From Rebecca billardiae RCC1528 (lineage: Eukaryota; Protista; Haptophyta), in the NCBI GenBank assembly GCA_965240325.2, contig OZ251253.1, forward strand, positions 744,001-808,000: a DNA stretch of 64,000 nucleotides. Direction: 5' to 3'. The notes beneath the pieces are model-generated. The model saw nothing but the letters and a program-made list of their open reading frames with translations. It had not been told where the DNA came from and did no database searches. The position numbers and the translations under genes are program-made. Numbering within the stretch: the first letter of the stretch is position 1; each line of letters begins with the position of its first letter. Shown piece after piece: positions 404 through 58,810 of this stretch.

Positions 404-2416
404 TCAGAGCGCGCCGGCCGTGCTGCCGGTGAGCGCGAGCAGCACGTCGTCCGCCGCGCGCGTGCCGTGCGCGAACGCCTCCTCGAGCAGCGAGAGCCCG
501 GCCATGTCCGAGTGCGCCCAGTGCACCACGCCCGCGTGCGGCCGCGCCGCCTGTTGGCGCGCCTCGCCCCACACAAAGCCGGGCGTGGGGCGGACCATCG
601 CGTGCGCGAGGAGCAGCACGTCGACGCGCGTCGCGAGCGCGCGGATATCCGGGTGCGCCGCCTCGAGCTCGGACAGCACGCGCTCCGCCCAGTACTCCCA
701 GTCCGTGCCACGCGCGAGCATGAGCGCGCGCGCCTCCGCCGGGGTGCGCGCTGAGAGCGCCGTGTAGTGCGTGAGCACCGCGGGCGCGCGCGCCGGCCAG
801 GCGGGCGGCCAGAGCGCCGCGGCCCAGGGGGCGCGCTCGCGCAGCGCCGCGCCGGCCTGGACGGAGGTGACCGTGTACCCGAGCCCGCCGCCCCCCTCCG
901 CCGCGGGCACGCCCCCCGGCCCGTTGTAGATCAGGTTGTCGCACGTGTGCGCGCCGCCGCGCGGCGGGCGGCGCAGCCCGACGTTGGCCACCACCCACGG
1001 CGCGTATGTGAAGTTTCGCAGAAACGGCGGGTCGTAGCCGGGGACGGTGTGGCGCGCGGTGAAGCGCGGCGCGGCGTAGATGACGCGGCGCGCGCGCACG
1101 CGCACCGACGACCCGCCCGCCGCGTCGAAGTACTCCACCGCCACGCCGCCGCCCTCCGCGGCGGGCAGCGGGCGCACGGCGTGCACGGCCGCGCGCGTGC
1201 GCGCGCGCTCGCCGAGCGCGGCCGCGAGGTGGCGCACGAGCCAGCCGTTGCCGTCGGGGCCCTCGAGGCGCGCGTCGGTGTCGCGCGCGGCGAAGTAGTG
1301 GACGAACGCCCACGCCGACGCCTCGCCCAGCGGCACGCCGTAGTCGTCGCGCATCGCGTACTCCAGCCACCAGCGCAGCCGCTCCGAGCGAACCCCCACC
1401 GCGTCCAGCCACGCGGCCGCGGACGCGGCGTCGAGCGCACGCGCGCGCGCGTCGACGAGGCAGTGCGAGATGGGCAGCGTGAAGCGGGCGCGTGCGGCGG
1501 GGCCCGGCGGCGGGGCGGCGGCGGAGGCCTCGCGCAGCCGCGCGCGCAGCGCCGCCGCCGCCGCCTCGCGCGGCCCCGAGTCCGGCGCCGAGTCCGGGGG
1601 GTCCGGGTGCGGCTGGCCGCGCACCTCGCGGCCCACCGCCTGCCTGAACGCGCCCAGCTGCGCGTGCTCGGCGGGCGTCATGAGGTGGGTGGGCAGCGCG
1701 CCGTCGTCGGAGAGGAGCCACGCGCCGCCGCCCCCCGCGCCCGCGCCCGGCGCGAACATCGACTCGACCGGCGGCTCGCACAGCAGCGAGCGCCGCCACC
1801 TCACCTCGCCCACGGCCGCGCTCGCGGCGGTCGGCACGCTGCCGTCCGCGCGCCGCCGGTACCCGAGGATGGCGCCCGCCTCCTCGAGGAGCGCGCGCAG
1901 CGGCACGTTCTCGCGCGGCGGGAGCGGGAGGTAGTGCGCCGCCCACGGGTGCGCGATCGGCTCGCCGCCGTCCACGCCCATCGCGCCGGACTTGGCGTTG
2001 CCCCCGAGGCTGGACTCGAGCTCAAGCAGCAGCACGTCCGTCAGCCCGGCGCGCACGAGGCGCCAGCCGGCGGTGAGGCCGGCGATGCCGCCGCCGACGA
2101 TGACGACGGCGGCGGTCTCCTCGCGCGTTGGCGCGGGGAAGCGCGCGCCGCCGTGCAGCGCCGCGCCGCCGTCGAACAGCCGGTGGCCGAGCCCGATCGA
2201 CGCGCCGACGATCCGGCCGTCGAGCGAGCCGGCGCGCGCCGGGCGCGAGAGGGTCCAGCGGAGGGCGGCGGCGAGGGTGCACGCGCCGGCGGCGAGGGTG
2301 GCGAGGAGGAGCGCCGCGCGGCGCGGCGTCGCGCCGCCGCGCCGCCGCGGCTGCGCGCGTATTGCTGGTGTGTCCCGCGGCAACAACGAGCCGCGCGCGC
2401 GGATCGCGGCCGCCAT
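404..2416 (-). CDS. FAD-dependent oxidoreductase (amine oxidase/NAD(P)-binding Rossmann family), intronless
   Basis: VVIVGGGIAGLTAG dinucleotide-binding motif, LLELESSLGGNA, WAAHYLP, MRDDYG, and C-terminal WAHSDMAGLSLLEEAF. ATG at 2416 is followed by a hydrophobic segment. Confidence 0.85.
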   Translation of the reverse strand: MAAAIRARGSLLPRDTPAIRAQPRRRGGATPRRAALLLATLAAGACTLAAALRWTLSRPARAGSLDGRIVGASIGLGHRLFDGGAALHGGARFPAPTREETAAVVIVGGGIAGLTAGWRLVRAGLTDVLLLELESSLGGNAKSGAMGVDGGEPIAHPWAAHYLPLPPRENVPLRALLEEAGAILGYRRRADGSVPTAASAAVGEVRWRRSLLCEPPVESMFAPGAGAGGGGAWLLSDDGALPTHLMTPAEHAQLGAFRQAVGREVRGQPHPDPPDSAPDSGPREAAAAALRARLREASAAAPPPGPAARARFTLPISHCLVDARARALDAASAAAWLDAVGVRSERLRWWLEYAMRDDYGVPLGEASAWAFVHYFAARDTDARLEGPDGNGWLVRHLAAALGERARTRAAVHAVRPLPAAEGGGVAVEYFDAAGGSSVRVRARRVIYAAPRFTARHTVPGYDPPFLRNFTYAPWVVANVGLRRPPRGGAHTCDNLIYNGPGGVPAAEGGGGLGYTVTSVQAGAALRERAPWAAALWPPAWPARAPAVLTHYTALSARTPAEARALMLARGTDWEYWAERVLSELEAAHPDIRALATRVDVLLLAHAMVRPTPGFVWGEARQQAARPHAGVVHWAHSDMAGLSLLEEAFAHGTRAADDVLLALTGSTAGAL

Positions 2417-2659
2417 CCCTGAAAGGCGTCGAGTCCTCGAATCCGGCCGTCGCCTGCCAGCCGCGCGCGCGCACGGCGCAGCCAATCAGCGTGCCGGGAC
2501 GCACGCGGCACGCACGCGCGGCTTCAGTGCGGACGGGCTTGCGCCAGCCCACGCTTGCTTGGCAGCTTGGCCGTCGGCGGGCGGCGCTCGCACCGCAGCG
2601 GCGGAGGCCGGGGCTCCGGGGGGTGGCGGCGGCGTCCGCGCGCCCCGGCGGCGGGCCGC

Positions 2660-4346
2660 ATGGTGGACTGCGACGTGCGCCCGGTGCTCGACCCGCGCGG
2701 GCGCGAGCTCGGCACCGTCGCGCTCACCATCCGCGTGCCGCCCAACCCGGTCGCGCGCGCGCACGTCGCCGAGCTGCTCGCCGACGCCGAGCGGCCGAGC
2801 TACGTGCGGCCGCGCGCGGAGTGGGTGGCGGACGGCAGCGTGGCGCCGCCGTACACGGCGGAGGTGCTGCTCACGCTCGACGGCCCGCCCGCCACGCCGT
2901 ACGCCGACGCGAGCTACCGCGTGCAGCTCTCGTTCACCGACTGCTACCCGGCGCGCCCGCCGGTCGTGCGCTTCGCGTCCATCCTGTACCACGCGCAGGT
3001 GGAGGAGGGCGGGCTGCTCGAGCCGGTGTTCTACGAGCGCCTCGAGTGGGCCACGCGCAAGGGCCGGAGCTCCCGCCACGTCCGCGCCGTCGTCGCGCTG
3101 CTGCGCACGATGCTCGTGGAGCCTCTGCCGGGCGGTCCGCCGCTGCACCCGCGCGTGCGGCAGCGGATCGAGCTGCTGCAGCAGCGGCGCACGCGCGTGA
3201 TCAACGCGTACGCGCCGCTGCACGCGGAGCTCTTCGACGCCGACGCGCTCTCGCCGCTCTCGCCCAAGTGGTTCCACGCGCCGCTGCTCGCCGCGCTGCG
3301 CGGCGCCGACCCCGGCGCCGCGCGCGCGCTGCTCCGCGAGGAGTGCGCGGGCGTGTACTCGTTTGAGCTGGCGACGCCGGCGTTCTGCCAGGCGTTCATG
3401 GCGGAGATGGCGCACTTCGAGGCGTCGGGGCTGCCCTCCAGCCGGCCCAACTCGATGAACAAGTACGGCGTGATCGTCAACGAGATGGGCCTCGAGCCGC
3501 TGGTGGACGCGCTGCAGGCGCAGCTGCTGCGGCCGCTCGGCCGGTTGCTGTACGCGCACGCGCCCGGCTGCGGCAGCCTGGACCACCACCACGCGTTCTC
3601 GGTGCAGTACGCGGCGCGCGCGCCGGGGGTGTCCTCCGACCAGGGGCTGGACATGCACCACGACGACTCGGAGCTCACGCTCAACCTGTGCGTCGGCAAG
3701 TCCTTCAGCGGCGCGCAGCTCACCATCTGCGGCGTGTTTGGCCAGCCCTCGTACAGACAGCTGCAGTACAAGTGAGCGCGCCGCGCGGGCGGCGGGCACA
3801 GCGCACGGCCGAGCCCGCGCGAGCGCGGCGCGGCGCGGGCCTCACGCGCCGCCCGCACCCTCGCCTTCCGCGCGCGCGCCCCGCCCCGTGCCCCCGCGCA
3901 GGTACACACACAGCCCGGGCCGCGCGCTGGTGCACCTGGGGCGGCAGCGGCACGGTGCAGACGACATAGCCAGCGGCGAGCGCATCAACCTGATCGTGTG
4001 GAGCCGCTCGTCCGCGCTGCGGCTGGCGAACCCGCGCGAGCGGCCCGCGCACCGCAAGGAGACGCCCGACCCGCTCTGCCTCTCGTACACCCACGACGAC
4101 GACTACGAGGAGTACCGCCCGCTGCCGCCGGGCGTGCTCTCGCGGCGCGAGCGGCTGCGGCGCGCGGGCGGCGGCTGACAGTGATGCATCGACGACTCCG
4201 ACGGCAGCGGCGCAGGCGACGACGCGCCGCCGGCCGCGCCCGGCGCCGAGGAGGGCGCGCGGGGCGCGGGCGGCGACGACGCCGCCGAGGACGTCGTCGG
4301 AGCGTTCGCCGCAGCCGTCGGCGCTGCCTCGGGCGCGGGCGCCTAA
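2660..4346 (+). CDS. UBC/UEV-like domain fused to an OGFOD2-like 2OG-Fe(II) oxygenase; exons 2660-3771 and 3902-4178 (ending at 4346 if both UGAs are read as Sec)
   Basis: E2-fold motif GPPATPYA...YPARPPVVRF...YH. Oxygenase motifs RPNSMNKYG, DMHHDDSELTLNLC, HGA and ERINLIVW. GT-AG intron 3772-3901 restores the frame. In-frame TGA CAG TGA TGC, then open to TAA 4344-4346. Confidence 0.85.
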
Positions 4347-4551
4347 GGCGCCACGGCCCCGGCCCCAGCGGCGCGCGCTCGGCAGCCGCCGCGCCGCCGC
4401 CCCGCCCGCCGCGCGCCGCGCGCGCACGCGCGCCGCCGCCGTCGCCGCCGCCCGCGGCCGCGGCCGGCGGCGGTGGCAGCAGCGCCCGGCGCGTGTGCGG
4501 GCGGCAGCGGTGGCGCGCGCCGGCTGCCCAGCCCGCCGCCCACGTGCCAGC

Positions 4552-4623
4552 CAGCCGGCCCATGACGACTCCGCCCTCCCTCGCGCACAGCGCGCCGGGC
4601 GGCTGTCTGAGACACACCGGCTG
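4552..4623 (+). promoter_or_regulatory. Candidate eukaryotic SECIS element (form II, CC in apical loop)
   Basis: Helix I CAGCCGG(4552-58)/CCGGCTG(4617-23). Core ATGAC(4562-66)/TGAG(4608-11). Helix II GACTCCGCCC/GGGCGGCTGTC. Unpaired CCC 11 nt above the core, with mini-stem CGCGC-ACA-GCGCG. Lies about 200 nt 3' of the TAA. Confidence 0.75.
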
Positions 4624-4999
4624 CAGCCCTGACAGTCCTGACTGACTGACCCGATTGATTGGCAAGTCTGACCACGCGAGACCAACCCCGCCGTGCGAGT
4701 AGGGCGGGGCCCGCGGGCTGCTCGCGGCGTCCGGGCGGACCCCGCCCGGGTGCCGCACCGCCCGTGTCCCGCGCGCTGCTCACAGCTCAGGGAAGCGTCC
4801 GATCGCGGCACTCCACGGCCTCGCTGCGGCCGACTCCGAAGTGCCGCGCTACTGCTGCTTTGCCGCGGGCGCGCAGCGGTGCCCGGCGCCGGGCCGGTAA
4901 CACTAACTACCGGGCCGGCGGGCCGCGCCGGCGCACGCCCGGCCCCGCGCGCACGCGCGGCACGCGCCGGGTGGCCGCCGCGGTCTGGAGTGCTCGTCA

Positions 5000-5055
5000 G
5001 TAGTTATTATTATTAATTATATAGTATATATATATAGAGTATATATATAATATGT
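5000..5055. repeat. TA-rich low-complexity tract
   Basis: TTA/TA runs in a GC-rich background. Confidence 0.7.
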
Positions 5056-5855
5056 GTCTGTTGCACTCTGAGCCTGACGCTTGTCGGATGCTGCCACGTC
5101 GTTATGGCGGGCCGTAGGTCCGCCCCTTGTAGTGCCCGGGAAAAAGATAAGAAAAAGAAAAAGAAAAAAGAAAATCGCCTCGCAGAGAAAAGAAAATCGC
5201 CTCGCTCACTGCCAGGTCGCTTCGCTCACTACCGGGCGCCCTCGCAGCTCCCACTGGGGACGCTCGGCCGAAAACCATCTGCGGCCTGGCGCGGAGCGCG
5301 TGGGCGGCGCGCGCCAAATCCAACGCCAGCGCGGACATCGTGAGGGGATTCCCGAACGGTGTTTTCGCCCGATTCGCGATTGCTGCCCTCGTCGTCTCGC
5401 GTGCAGGTCGAACGGGGGCTAAATCGACGCGTTGGAGCGGTACGCTCGGCGCGTCGACACGATCGTGCGACCTGGGGCGATCCTCGCCCGACGTGCACGT
5501 CGAGCGCTCGCACGGGCCATAGCATCATGCGCTGCGCAAGACAACCACCTCGCACGATCCACCGTCGCGCGTCGGGCTCGGTGCGGAAACGCATTCATCA
5601 CGAGGCGTCTCGCGGGCGGGAAGCGCCATCGCACGCGACGCAAGCTTTGGCGCGGCCTTCTGAACACCATAACCGGAATGCACACACCGGACTGTCGTCG
5701 CGTGCCCCGGTTGGCAAGGTCGGGCGCATGCAAATCCGTTTGCTACGGTCGGTGGTGTTCCAGAGCGAGCGCTCATCTTTCATCTTTCACGCTCGCGAGC
5801 TCGCGGGCTCGCGGCTAAGGATCGCTCGGCGCTCGAGGACCCACGTCCGGCCTGC

Positions 5856-56950: not shown

Positions 56951-58810
56951 CCGCCGGGCCGAGCCTCTGGCAGGCGGCCGATGCGCGCGCCGCGCTCGCG
57001 GCCGCGGCGCTGTGCCGACGCGCGTCCGAGCCCCAACTACTAGCCGAGCAGCCTGAGGCGGAGACAATAAGGGCCGGCGGCTGGCGGGATCCCGCCTGAG
57101 CACGCGGTGACAGGGTACGCGGGGCCCCCGACCACCCGCTCCCTAGAGCAGCGGGGTTGGCTGTACGCTCGCTGGAGCCAGCTGCAAGCATGCCGTGCCC
57201 GACGCAGCTGCTCCCGAGCTGACTGCCGCCGAGCGGCTCGGGCTCAGCGGGGGAGCGGTCAAGAGGCCCACCTCAGCAGCGCTCGGCACTGTCGAGCGGA
57301 GCTGGCCCCGAGGCTCACCACTGCACAACCACCGGGCTCTGGCGCTGCGCCCAGCATATCACCCCGCCTCGCCGAGGGCCAACTCAACAGTGGCCCCGCC
57401 GCTGCTCAACCCACACACTCCACGCCCGACGCCGCCCGCCCCCGGGCCGCCACTGGCACCCCGCTCGCGCACGGCGCTGAGGCGCGGGACGTTTGCCGCT
57501 GTCGGCGCATCGGCGGCAGCGGCGTGCACGCTGAAGGTGCCACTCTCAGCTGTCCAGGCGTTGGCCCTCGACACATGGAGCGGCCGCGCTTCGCCGCCGA
57601 GCGGCGCACACGACGGCGCGGAGCATCGCGCGGGCGGGGGACCACTTCCATGGCTGATGGCGCGAGAGCGGCGACCGGACTCAGCCCGCCGCGCCGGAGA
57701 TTTTGAACGGTGGCGCGCGCGCGAGTGCCACCGGATTTCGTCGTTTCGCGCCGGGTGGCAAACGGTCCAATCACGCGCGCCGCGGCCGCTGCGCCGTGCA
57801 GCTCGGCAGCGGGGCGCGCCGAGCTGCCGCGAAGCTCGGGCAGGTCTGCAGCTGTGCAGTCCGCTGCAGCACGCGGCATCCGCCATGGGCGGCGCTGCGC
57901 TCGGACGACGGGGGCCCGCGCGTGCGCGCACGGTGGGGGGTGGTGGCCGGGCGGCCGCGTGAGGGCGCTGCCGAGGTCCGCCTGCCGCCGCCGCCGACGC
58001 GCGCGCTCCGGCCGCCGCCCCGCTGAGGCGCGCGCGCGCGCGCTCGGCGCGGCGGCGCCTTTGCGCGCCGCCGCTCGCGCGCGGCGCTCGCGCCCGACCG
58101 CGCCGTCGGCGCGGCGGGGTGCCGCCGCGCGGCACAGTGGCGGTTTGACCGAACCGCTCGCGCGGCGAGGCGCGGCGCGCCGCCTCTGGGCGCGCCGGCG
58201 CGCGCGGCGCGGCGCGCGCGCCGCCCGCGGCGCGCGCCGCCGCCGCCGGCCGCGCCGCGCGCCGCAGCGGCGTGCGGCGCGGCGCAGGCGTGGCGGCGTG
58301 GCGCGCACGCGGCGTGCAGCTGCCGCCAGCGGCGCGCGCTGACGCCGGCGCGCCCCCGCGCGGCGAGCCCATCGGCGCCGCCGCGGCCGCGCGCGCGCGC
58401 GTCTGCCGCGGCCGAGCCGCGGCCGCCGCGCGCGCGCCTGACGAGCGCCGGCACGCGGCGCGCGCGCGTGCGCGCGCACGCGTGCACGCCGACGGGCGGG
58501 GCCCTCGGCGTACGCGCGCTTCCGCCCGCGCGCGCCTCGCGCGCGGGCGCCCGCCTGCCCGCGCGCGGCGGCCGGGCTGCGCCGCGCGCCGCGCCCGCGC
58601 AACCGGCGCGCGGCGCGCGGCGCGCGCCGCGCCGCCGCCGCCGCCGCCGCCGCGGCGCGCGCCGCGGGCCCGAGGCGGGTGGCGCGCCCGTGGCGGCGGG
58701 TGGCGAGGTGGTGGCGCGCCCGCCGATCTGCCGCGTCGTGCAGCGCGGTCGCCGCACAGACTGCGGCGGCGGTGCGGCGGACGGCGGGCGGCGCGGCGGA
58801 CGGCGGCGGC

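Follow-up and report, generated by a model that had tools for sequence, protein, structure and literature searches.

A putative Sec-x-Sec-Cys end on a UEV/OGFOD2-type 2-oxoglutarate oxygenase of the haptophyte Rebecca billardiae

In thioredoxin reductase, a pyridine-nucleotide disulfide oxidoreductase, selenocysteine (Sec, U) is the penultimate residue of a C-terminal Gly-Cys-Sec-Gly redox arm, and the C-terminal domain of SELENOP contains U-x-U pairs. To our knowledge, selenoproteins are overwhelmingly of the thiol-oxidoreductase type. Closely spaced multi-Sec motifs also occur in algae with large selenoproteomes, as in the G-U-G-U-U motif of PDI_e (PMC7539508), and a survey of 137 algal species reported 42 selenoprotein families as well as three new ones (PDI_e, AhpC_b plus SymSEP), without mention of an oxygenase (PMC7539508). 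The 2007 paper on the eukaryotic selenoproteome contains no oxygenase selenoprotein either. In the searchable literature we found no 2-oxoglutarate (2OG) oxygenase selenoprotein, a result that is provisional as many papers lie beyond the search, and OGFOD2 itself appears there only in association studies; within this limit, the statement in a preliminary description of the locus that no OGFOD2-like dioxygenase has been described as a selenoprotein stands. Here we analyse this locus in a stretch of 64,000 nucleotides of Rebecca billardiae RCC1528 (contig OZ251253.1, positions 744,001 to 808,000; hereafter the window). It very probably encodes a selenoprotein, a 2OG-Fe(II) oxygenase of OGFOD2 type with a domain like the ubiquitin E2 variants (UEV), in which two UGA codons would be recoded via a selenocysteine insertion sequence (SECIS) in the 3′ untranslated region (UTR).

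The apparent stop of the gene, the codons CAG, TGA and TGC that follow, the 52 further codons and the final TAA are all where the preliminary description had placed them (Table 1). The mRNA would thus hold two UGAs six bases apart (4176 and 4182), both of which the type II SECIS at 4552-4623 would recode as selenocysteine, and translation would run on through ...GGG-Sec-Gln-Sec-Cys and an acidic tail of 52 residues to the TAA at 4344. For R. billardiae itself we infer Sec insertion from comparison of sequences. This reading, already put forward with its two Sec and acidic tail, is supported by UGAs conserved in orthologues, by Cys in homologues and by SECIS candidates of the orthologues; the case draws its strength from this comparison and not from the open frame or the hairpin alone.

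In a protein search, the full-length relatives of 445-453 aa all terminate with ...GGG or ...GGA at the same site. Ten further members of the clade were obtained from metagenome and metatranscriptome contigs and from truncated representatives traced to their DNA. At the position of the window motif, 13 further sequences, all of one clade, display an in-frame TGA-NNN-TGA, the spacer being longer in L008, and TGC or TGT comes directly after the second TGA in 8 of the 13. Both TGAs are fixed whereas the middle codon is free and varies at all three positions (CAG, CTG, CGC, TCG, TAC, CAC, AGC and others). Moreover, TAA or TAG is found at most six codons past the last TGA of the motif in 14/17 Sec-type sequences, with ~4.5% expected from the local frequency of these triplets (binomial p ~1e-16, indicative only as the sequences are related). 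Thus, where it had been asked whether the UGAs align with Cys or with conserved TGA in other algae, the answer is a conserved TGA-NNN-TGA, mostly with the Cys codon, and the orthologues do not merely stop at this site: TGAs and downstream SECIS candidates are kept, usually with a true stop nearby. Both UGAs are carried by the transcript-derived contig L001, and the contig L018, which ends with poly(A), holds UGAs together with a weaker SECIS-shaped hairpin.

In a tree inferred by maximum likelihood from the oxygenase region, all 14 G-G-U-x-U sequences form one clade (SH-like approximate likelihood ratio test, SH-aLRT, 90) that comprises two subclades, each with SH-aLRT 99. One of them includes the window, L001, L002 and Diacronema lutheri, all with long acidic tails, and the other, to which Isochrysis galbana belongs, includes the remaining sequences with short ends. 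As the clade holds pavlovophyte as well as prymnesiophyte members, the predicted Sec end appears to span haptophytes, from Pavlovales to Isochrysidales, in addition to many marine metagenome and metatranscriptome sequences. Public models of D. lutheri (KFE25_003772, L004 3001-4604, GCA_019448385.1) and I. galbana (EukProt, P0023) stop at the first putative Sec codon; public annotations therefore shorten the protein, as had been predicted for standard gene calling. In family members with a K/R/HDEL end, the closing codon may equally be TGA, TAA or TAG, and nothing beyond it is conserved. TGA is consequently an ordinary stop in these organisms, and as it occurs as such after KDEL-type ends within the same family, UGA reassignment was rejected.

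The wider family provides a second line of comparison. A HMMER search against 1.84 billion representatives gave 2,660 family members, and motifs were counted in the best 150 of these plus earlier matches, a sample of 156 proteins of which 71 have the CLSYTHD block. In 52 of these 71, a W-C-P(-P) motif lies ~18 residues past the D-x-D-Y block, while 7 end at GG, truncated at the TGA. The first Sec aligns with the G-W-C-P-P cysteine, at identical spacing from PPGK (G-G-U versus G-W-C), U being scored as C, which favours this match. In the clade, the Gly-Gly-Sec-x-Sec(-Cys) end would stand in for the one Cys (G-W-C-P-P) that is conserved across the wider OGFOD2/ICU11 family. The G-W-C-P-P segment is ordered in the structure model of the Cys-type member P0014, with a predicted local distance difference test score (pLDDT) of 96-97; at the truncated end of the Sec-type P0003 model, pLDDT falls to ~74. 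Other ends exist in the family. P0027/L091 terminates with GGG-TAG, without Sec. A group with A-W-Y-P-P, where Tyr stands for Cys (L014, L023, L034, L043-L045, L052, L056, L082), always ends with ...VKM[KR]-TGA and has nothing conserved after it; its existence implies that the Cys position is dispensable for fold or catalysis in some lineages.

Downstream of the motif, 14 loci contain type II hairpins with an AUGA...GA core and an architecture like that in the window, 85-390 nt past the first UGA. The unpaired residues are AAA or AAAA in L006, L007, L008, L013, L017, L025, L086 and L087, and CAA in L010, while the elements of L016, L018 and L088 are weaker. A strict scanner for the AA type detected 8 elements in 15 Sec-type loci versus 3 in 56 Cys-type controls (Fisher p = 7e-5, overstated by kinship; four loci were reclassified by hand). 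A loose hairpin scanner proved to be unspecific, with hits in 14/15 Sec loci but also in 25/56 controls, so that the two groups are told apart by the AA-type criterion alone. Alignment of the SECIS candidates with plain MAFFT was incorrect and made the RNAalifold result meaningless; in its place we relied on a structure given by hand and on a covariance model (R1) trained on seven orthologue elements, with those of the window and L004 left out. For L086 (58 bits) and for L087, L088 and L004 (11-13 bits), R1 scores highest on the element that lies downstream of the UGAs. Rfam SECIS_1 finds the L008 element with 23.7 bits, which does not reach the cut-off of 35, the sole match in a scan of 11 orthologue loci. 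L008 also displays a very stable hairpin at 1835-1904 (inner stem ~-44 kcal/mol) that starts at the UGA-UGA codons, upstream of its SECIS candidate at 1951, and might be an element of the Sec-redefinition type or a chance structure.

In the window, the hairpin noticed in the preliminary description takes a SECIS shape in the unconstrained minimum free energy (MFE) fold. Helix I pairs 4552-58 with 4617-23 (7 bp), and the core places AUGA (4562-65) opposite UGA (4608-10, with GA at 4609-10). Helix II has ~9 bp, with a 5′ strand of 11 nt, and the apex consists of unpaired UCCCU (4577-81), a 5-bp mini-stem and a 3-nt loop. It was the only match of a SECIS-shape scan over 4137-5577. The top match of R1 in the whole window, both strands included, lies within this element (4554-4618; 16.2 bits, rough E 0.025), which is also the best match outside the training set across 340 kb of loci. 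The second-best match in the window, at 57646-57706 (+) with 14.2 bits, has CUGA for AUGA and a fold that is not SECIS-like; it is probably due to chance and was rejected.

The tail itself looks like coding sequence. Its GC content at codon positions 1/2/3 is 0.89/0.70/0.92, and this periodicity is gone past the TAA (0.91/0.93/0.90), in agreement with the gene-like codon usage claimed for it earlier. The same periodicity, even stronger, is found in the tails of L001 and L002. Between the window and a near-identical strain (L005), the tail differs by 3 substitutions and 0 indels. The closest three relatives (L001, L002, L004) likewise continue in frame into an acidic tail, with a stretch that resembles D-[DE]-A-P-P.

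Several observations weigh against recoding. The 53-codon open frame is by itself not above chance: the window has a GC content of 67-86%, TAA and TAG, at ~0.3% of downstream positions, are scarce in such DNA, and an open frame beyond the TGA is therefore unremarkable. The window element is non-canonical, UCCCU replacing the unpaired AA and a G coming after the 3′ GA, and its R1 score is just 16 bits. The hairpin is not more stable than shuffled sequences (z = -0.16), and Rfam detects no SECIS in the whole window at the gathering cut-off, nor in 4100-5100 at E <= 10. The D. lutheri element is also without AA (11 bits). The p-values above overstate independence, the sequences being kin. Finally, a separate lineage (L016, L018, L025, L089) combines the W-C-P cysteine with C-terminal UGAs, and the correspondence of the first Sec with the cysteine of W-C-P-P may therefore be positional and not historical.

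Some of these points would be expected if the TGA at 4176 were the true stop, backed up in tandem by the second TGA, and if the similarity further downstream were that of a conserved 3′ UTR. The public gene models P0002, P0003 and P0004 end there, the open frame beyond is expected at such GC, and the window has no Rfam SECIS match. But a true stop at 4176 would leave unexplained the conserved Cys codon next to a freely varying middle codon, the TAA or TAG 1-6 codons later in 14/17 sequences, the codon periodicity of the tail, the Cys in the same column of homologues, and downstream SECIS candidates that are present in orthologues and rare in Cys-type controls. We therefore regard a genuine stop as very unlikely.

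A somewhat less improbable explanation, though still an unlikely one, is that the family is truly a selenoprotein family but that the gene has decayed here, its SECIS having lost the AA, so that the protein ends with GGG and the remainder is a recent relic. The window element is indeed non-canonical and low-scoring, and P0027/L091 shows that a ...GGG end with a genuine TAG is possible in the family. However, the two UGAs are intact together with the Cys codon, the reading frame and the periodicity of the tail; intact too are the SECIS core, the helix lengths and the mini-stem, and the tail of the near-identical strain L005 is free of indels. Cytosines in place of adenines are found in a few known SECIS (PMC3753652). 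Moreover, D. lutheri shares the non-AA type of element, which argues for a tolerated variant. Judging by the elements of the window and D. lutheri, SECIS without AA may be tolerated in very GC-rich genomes, a point that matters for SECIS-based gene finders. Recoding of both UGAs remains the reading that we favour.

The gene model comprises two exons (Table 1). The start and the end of exon 1 agree with the orthologues, and its HxD is that of ...LDMHHDDSE.... The intron has no codon periodicity (GC at codon positions 1/2/3 of 0.91/0.86/0.88), and the spliced product, ...SYRQLQYK joined to YTHSPGRALVHLGRQRHGADD, matches the orthologues without gaps. Exon 2 provides the distal His together with the Arg that binds 2OG (HLGRQRHGADD...GERINLIVW); after these come the conserved PDxxCLSYTHDxDY block, a linker of basic character and GGG. 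One could imagine that a further intron, overlooked here, contains the UGAs, or that they are excised or edited before the mRNA is mature, as CTGACAG at 4175-81 resembles a branch point followed by an acceptor. Yet both UGAs are retained in the transcript-derived orthologue contig L001 and in the poly(A)-ended L018, and by inspection no in-frame upstream donor yields a stop-free product, which makes such removal hardly credible.

Table 1. Coordinates of the gene features in the window and predicted ends of related sequences (U, predicted selenocysteine)
Sequence	Feature	Position	Strand	Details
Window	Exon 1	2660..3771	+	ATG 2660; UEV-like (E2 variant) domain, OGFOD2-like domain, first half of 2OG-Fe(II) oxygenase barrel
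Window	Intron	3772..3901	+	GT donor 3772, AG acceptor 3900-01, phase 2
Window	Exon 2, portion kept by gene callers	3902..4175	+	Basis: orthologue alignment
Window	Putative Sec-Gln-Sec-Cys motif, TGA-CAG-TGA-TGC	4176..4187	+	First TGA 4176-78, second TGA 4182-84, TGC 4185-87
Window	Predicted acidic, Gly/Ala-rich 52-residue tail and likely true stop	4188..4346	+	TAA 4344-46
Window	Candidate type II SECIS, 3′ UTR	4552..4623	+	Unconstrained MFE fold, shape scan, covariance model
L001 (MMETSP transcriptome)	TGA-CTG-TGA-TGC (ULUC)			Then in-frame acidic tail
L002/L003	TGA-CGC-TGA-TGC (URUC)			Then in-frame acidic tail
L004 (Diacronema lutheri)	TGA-TCG-TGA-TGC (USUC)			Then in-frame acidic tail
L006	C-terminal end UQUSR-stop			
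L007	C-terminal end USUPKGFC-stop			
L008	C-terminal end UGGUURFAE-stop			TGA-GGC-GGA-TGA-TGA, longer spacer
L010	C-terminal end USUUPP-stop			
L013	C-terminal end UHURR-stop			
L017	C-terminal end URUCRPLDP-stop			
L019	C-terminal end USUC-stop			
L086	C-terminal end URUCR-stop			
L087 (Isochrysis galbana)	C-terminal end UYUC-stop			
L088	C-terminal end UYUC-stop			Cys = TGT
L016	End GGG-U-S-U-R-U-R-stop	862-888		
L018	End G-U-H-U-D-stop-stop	1143-1163		
L025	End H-U-Q-G-U-G-N-stop	1045-1071		
L089	End GGG-U-H-G-stop	1656-1667		

The domain composition proposed in the preliminary description, a UEV domain followed by an OGFOD2-type 2OG-Fe(II) oxygenase, is borne out by Pfam matches to UQ_con (41.8 bits, cut-off 27) and to OGFOD2-like (PF25238; 89.7 bits, cut-off 31). 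In the E2-like part, Glu (...YHAQVEEGGLLEPVFY..., ...YHAQVEEGGLLE...) occupies the position at which an E2 has its catalytic Cys after the HPN motif, and this Cys is also missing in the orthologues. Because of this replacement the name UEV is apt, and an active ubiquitin-conjugating enzyme (E2) is ruled out; the domain is UEV-like only. The oxygenase part has both the HxD...H that binds Fe and the Arg that binds 2OG; across 92 aligned family members these four residues do not vary, nor does the Cys of CLSYTHD. Evidence for the fold comes from an AlphaFold 2 model of the orthologue P0003, standing in for the window protein (pLDDT 92.5; predicted template modelling score 0.90). Compared with reviewed proteins, its fold is nearest to those of CP2 and ICU11 from Arabidopsis and of OGFOD2 from vertebrates (E 1e-25 to 1e-23, ~30% identity), and the closest solved structures to the oxygenase half are the lysyl hydroxylases LH3 and mimivirus L230.

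Outside the clade, SECIS-like hairpins lie downstream of the motif in three of the four loci L016, L018, L025 and L089. These may represent a second, independent set of Sec-tailed oxygenases, and C-terminal Sec ends may have arisen more than once, or predate the clade. Two other loci, L011 and L015, have a C-terminal ...RH[VA]-U-H-D before TAG or TAA, after the W-C-P motif, and an Amoebophrya homologue (L090 2566-2586) reads GGA-TGA-FDALS-TAA with an ATGA-containing stretch downstream; in these three loci Sec is a candidate only.

Head-to-head with the oxygenase gene, the window contains a gene for an FAD/NAD(P)-binding oxidoreductase (404-2485, minus strand; Pfam NAD_binding_8), 52% identical to the head-to-head partner of the D. 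lutheri orthologue (L004 1031-2923, minus strand). The intergenic region shared by the divergent genes is short in the two algae, ~175 bp and ~78 bp. The two algae share the pair, which was not seen beside other orthologues. It is conceivable that this flavoprotein is a partner of a redox tail.

As for function, we infer that the tail is a flexible redox-active or metal-binding arm serving the oxygenase. Preceded by Gly and probably flexible, an end that bears two selenols and a thiol could give a diselenide or a selenylsulfide; such an arm might re-reduce the iron after uncoupled turnover, load metal or act as a redox switch, and by its position the Sec tail would take over the role of the conserved G-W-C-P-P cysteine. 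A further proposal, which we advance tentatively and hold to be rather doubtful at present, is that these proteins constitute the first selenoprotein family of 2OG-Fe(II) oxygenases, in which a mobile C-terminal Gly-Gly-Sec-x-Sec-Cys arm, having replaced the G-W-C-P-P cysteine, works on the catalytic centre as a built-in redox device of diselenide/selenylsulfide type or as an iron-handling one and makes a haptophyte hydroxylase activity, possibly chromatin- or protein-modifying, dependent on selenium. With a non-haem iron/2-oxoglutarate oxygenase bearing a Sec-x-Sec-Cys end, the selenoproteome would gain a new enzyme class, and such an enzyme would help to explain the selenium need of haptophytes, major primary producers of the ocean. 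The motif also draws attention to the G-W-C-P-P cysteine as functionally important in the OGFOD2/ICU11 family, which still awaits a biochemical function.

The window protein shares with animal OGFOD2 and Arabidopsis ICU11 and CP2 the OGFOD2-like domain, the HxD...H...R residues and the fold, at ~30% identity. It differs from them by the fused N-terminal UEV-like domain and by its predicted GG-Sec-x-Sec-Cys end, where they have a Cys-containing segment, and in the literature searched none of the three is described as a selenoprotein. Like UEV domains, its N-terminal part matches the UQ_con profile, with a UBC fold that lacks the catalytic Cys; unlike them, it is fused to an oxygenase. The resemblance to thioredoxin reductase lies in Sec placed near Cys on a Gly-preceded C-terminal extension of a complete enzyme, in a UGA mistaken for a stop and in one 3′ UTR SECIS per gene, a candidate element here. 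However, the two predicted Sec have one residue between them, a 52-residue acidic tail comes after the motif in the subclade of the window, and the fold is that of a 2OG oxygenase and not of a flavoprotein. As both motif (G-G-U-x-U-C) and fold differ, a redox centre of the thioredoxin reductase type is ruled out; the parallel is no more than an analogy, and the redox role is a proposal. With PDI_e and SELENOP the locus has in common several UGAs within a few codons, which here would likewise be decoded with a 3′ UTR SECIS; protein family and domain context are different, the U-x-U-C here ending a dioxygenase. What is provisionally new is the family together with its U-x-U-C end, whereas the recoding mechanism would be the known one.

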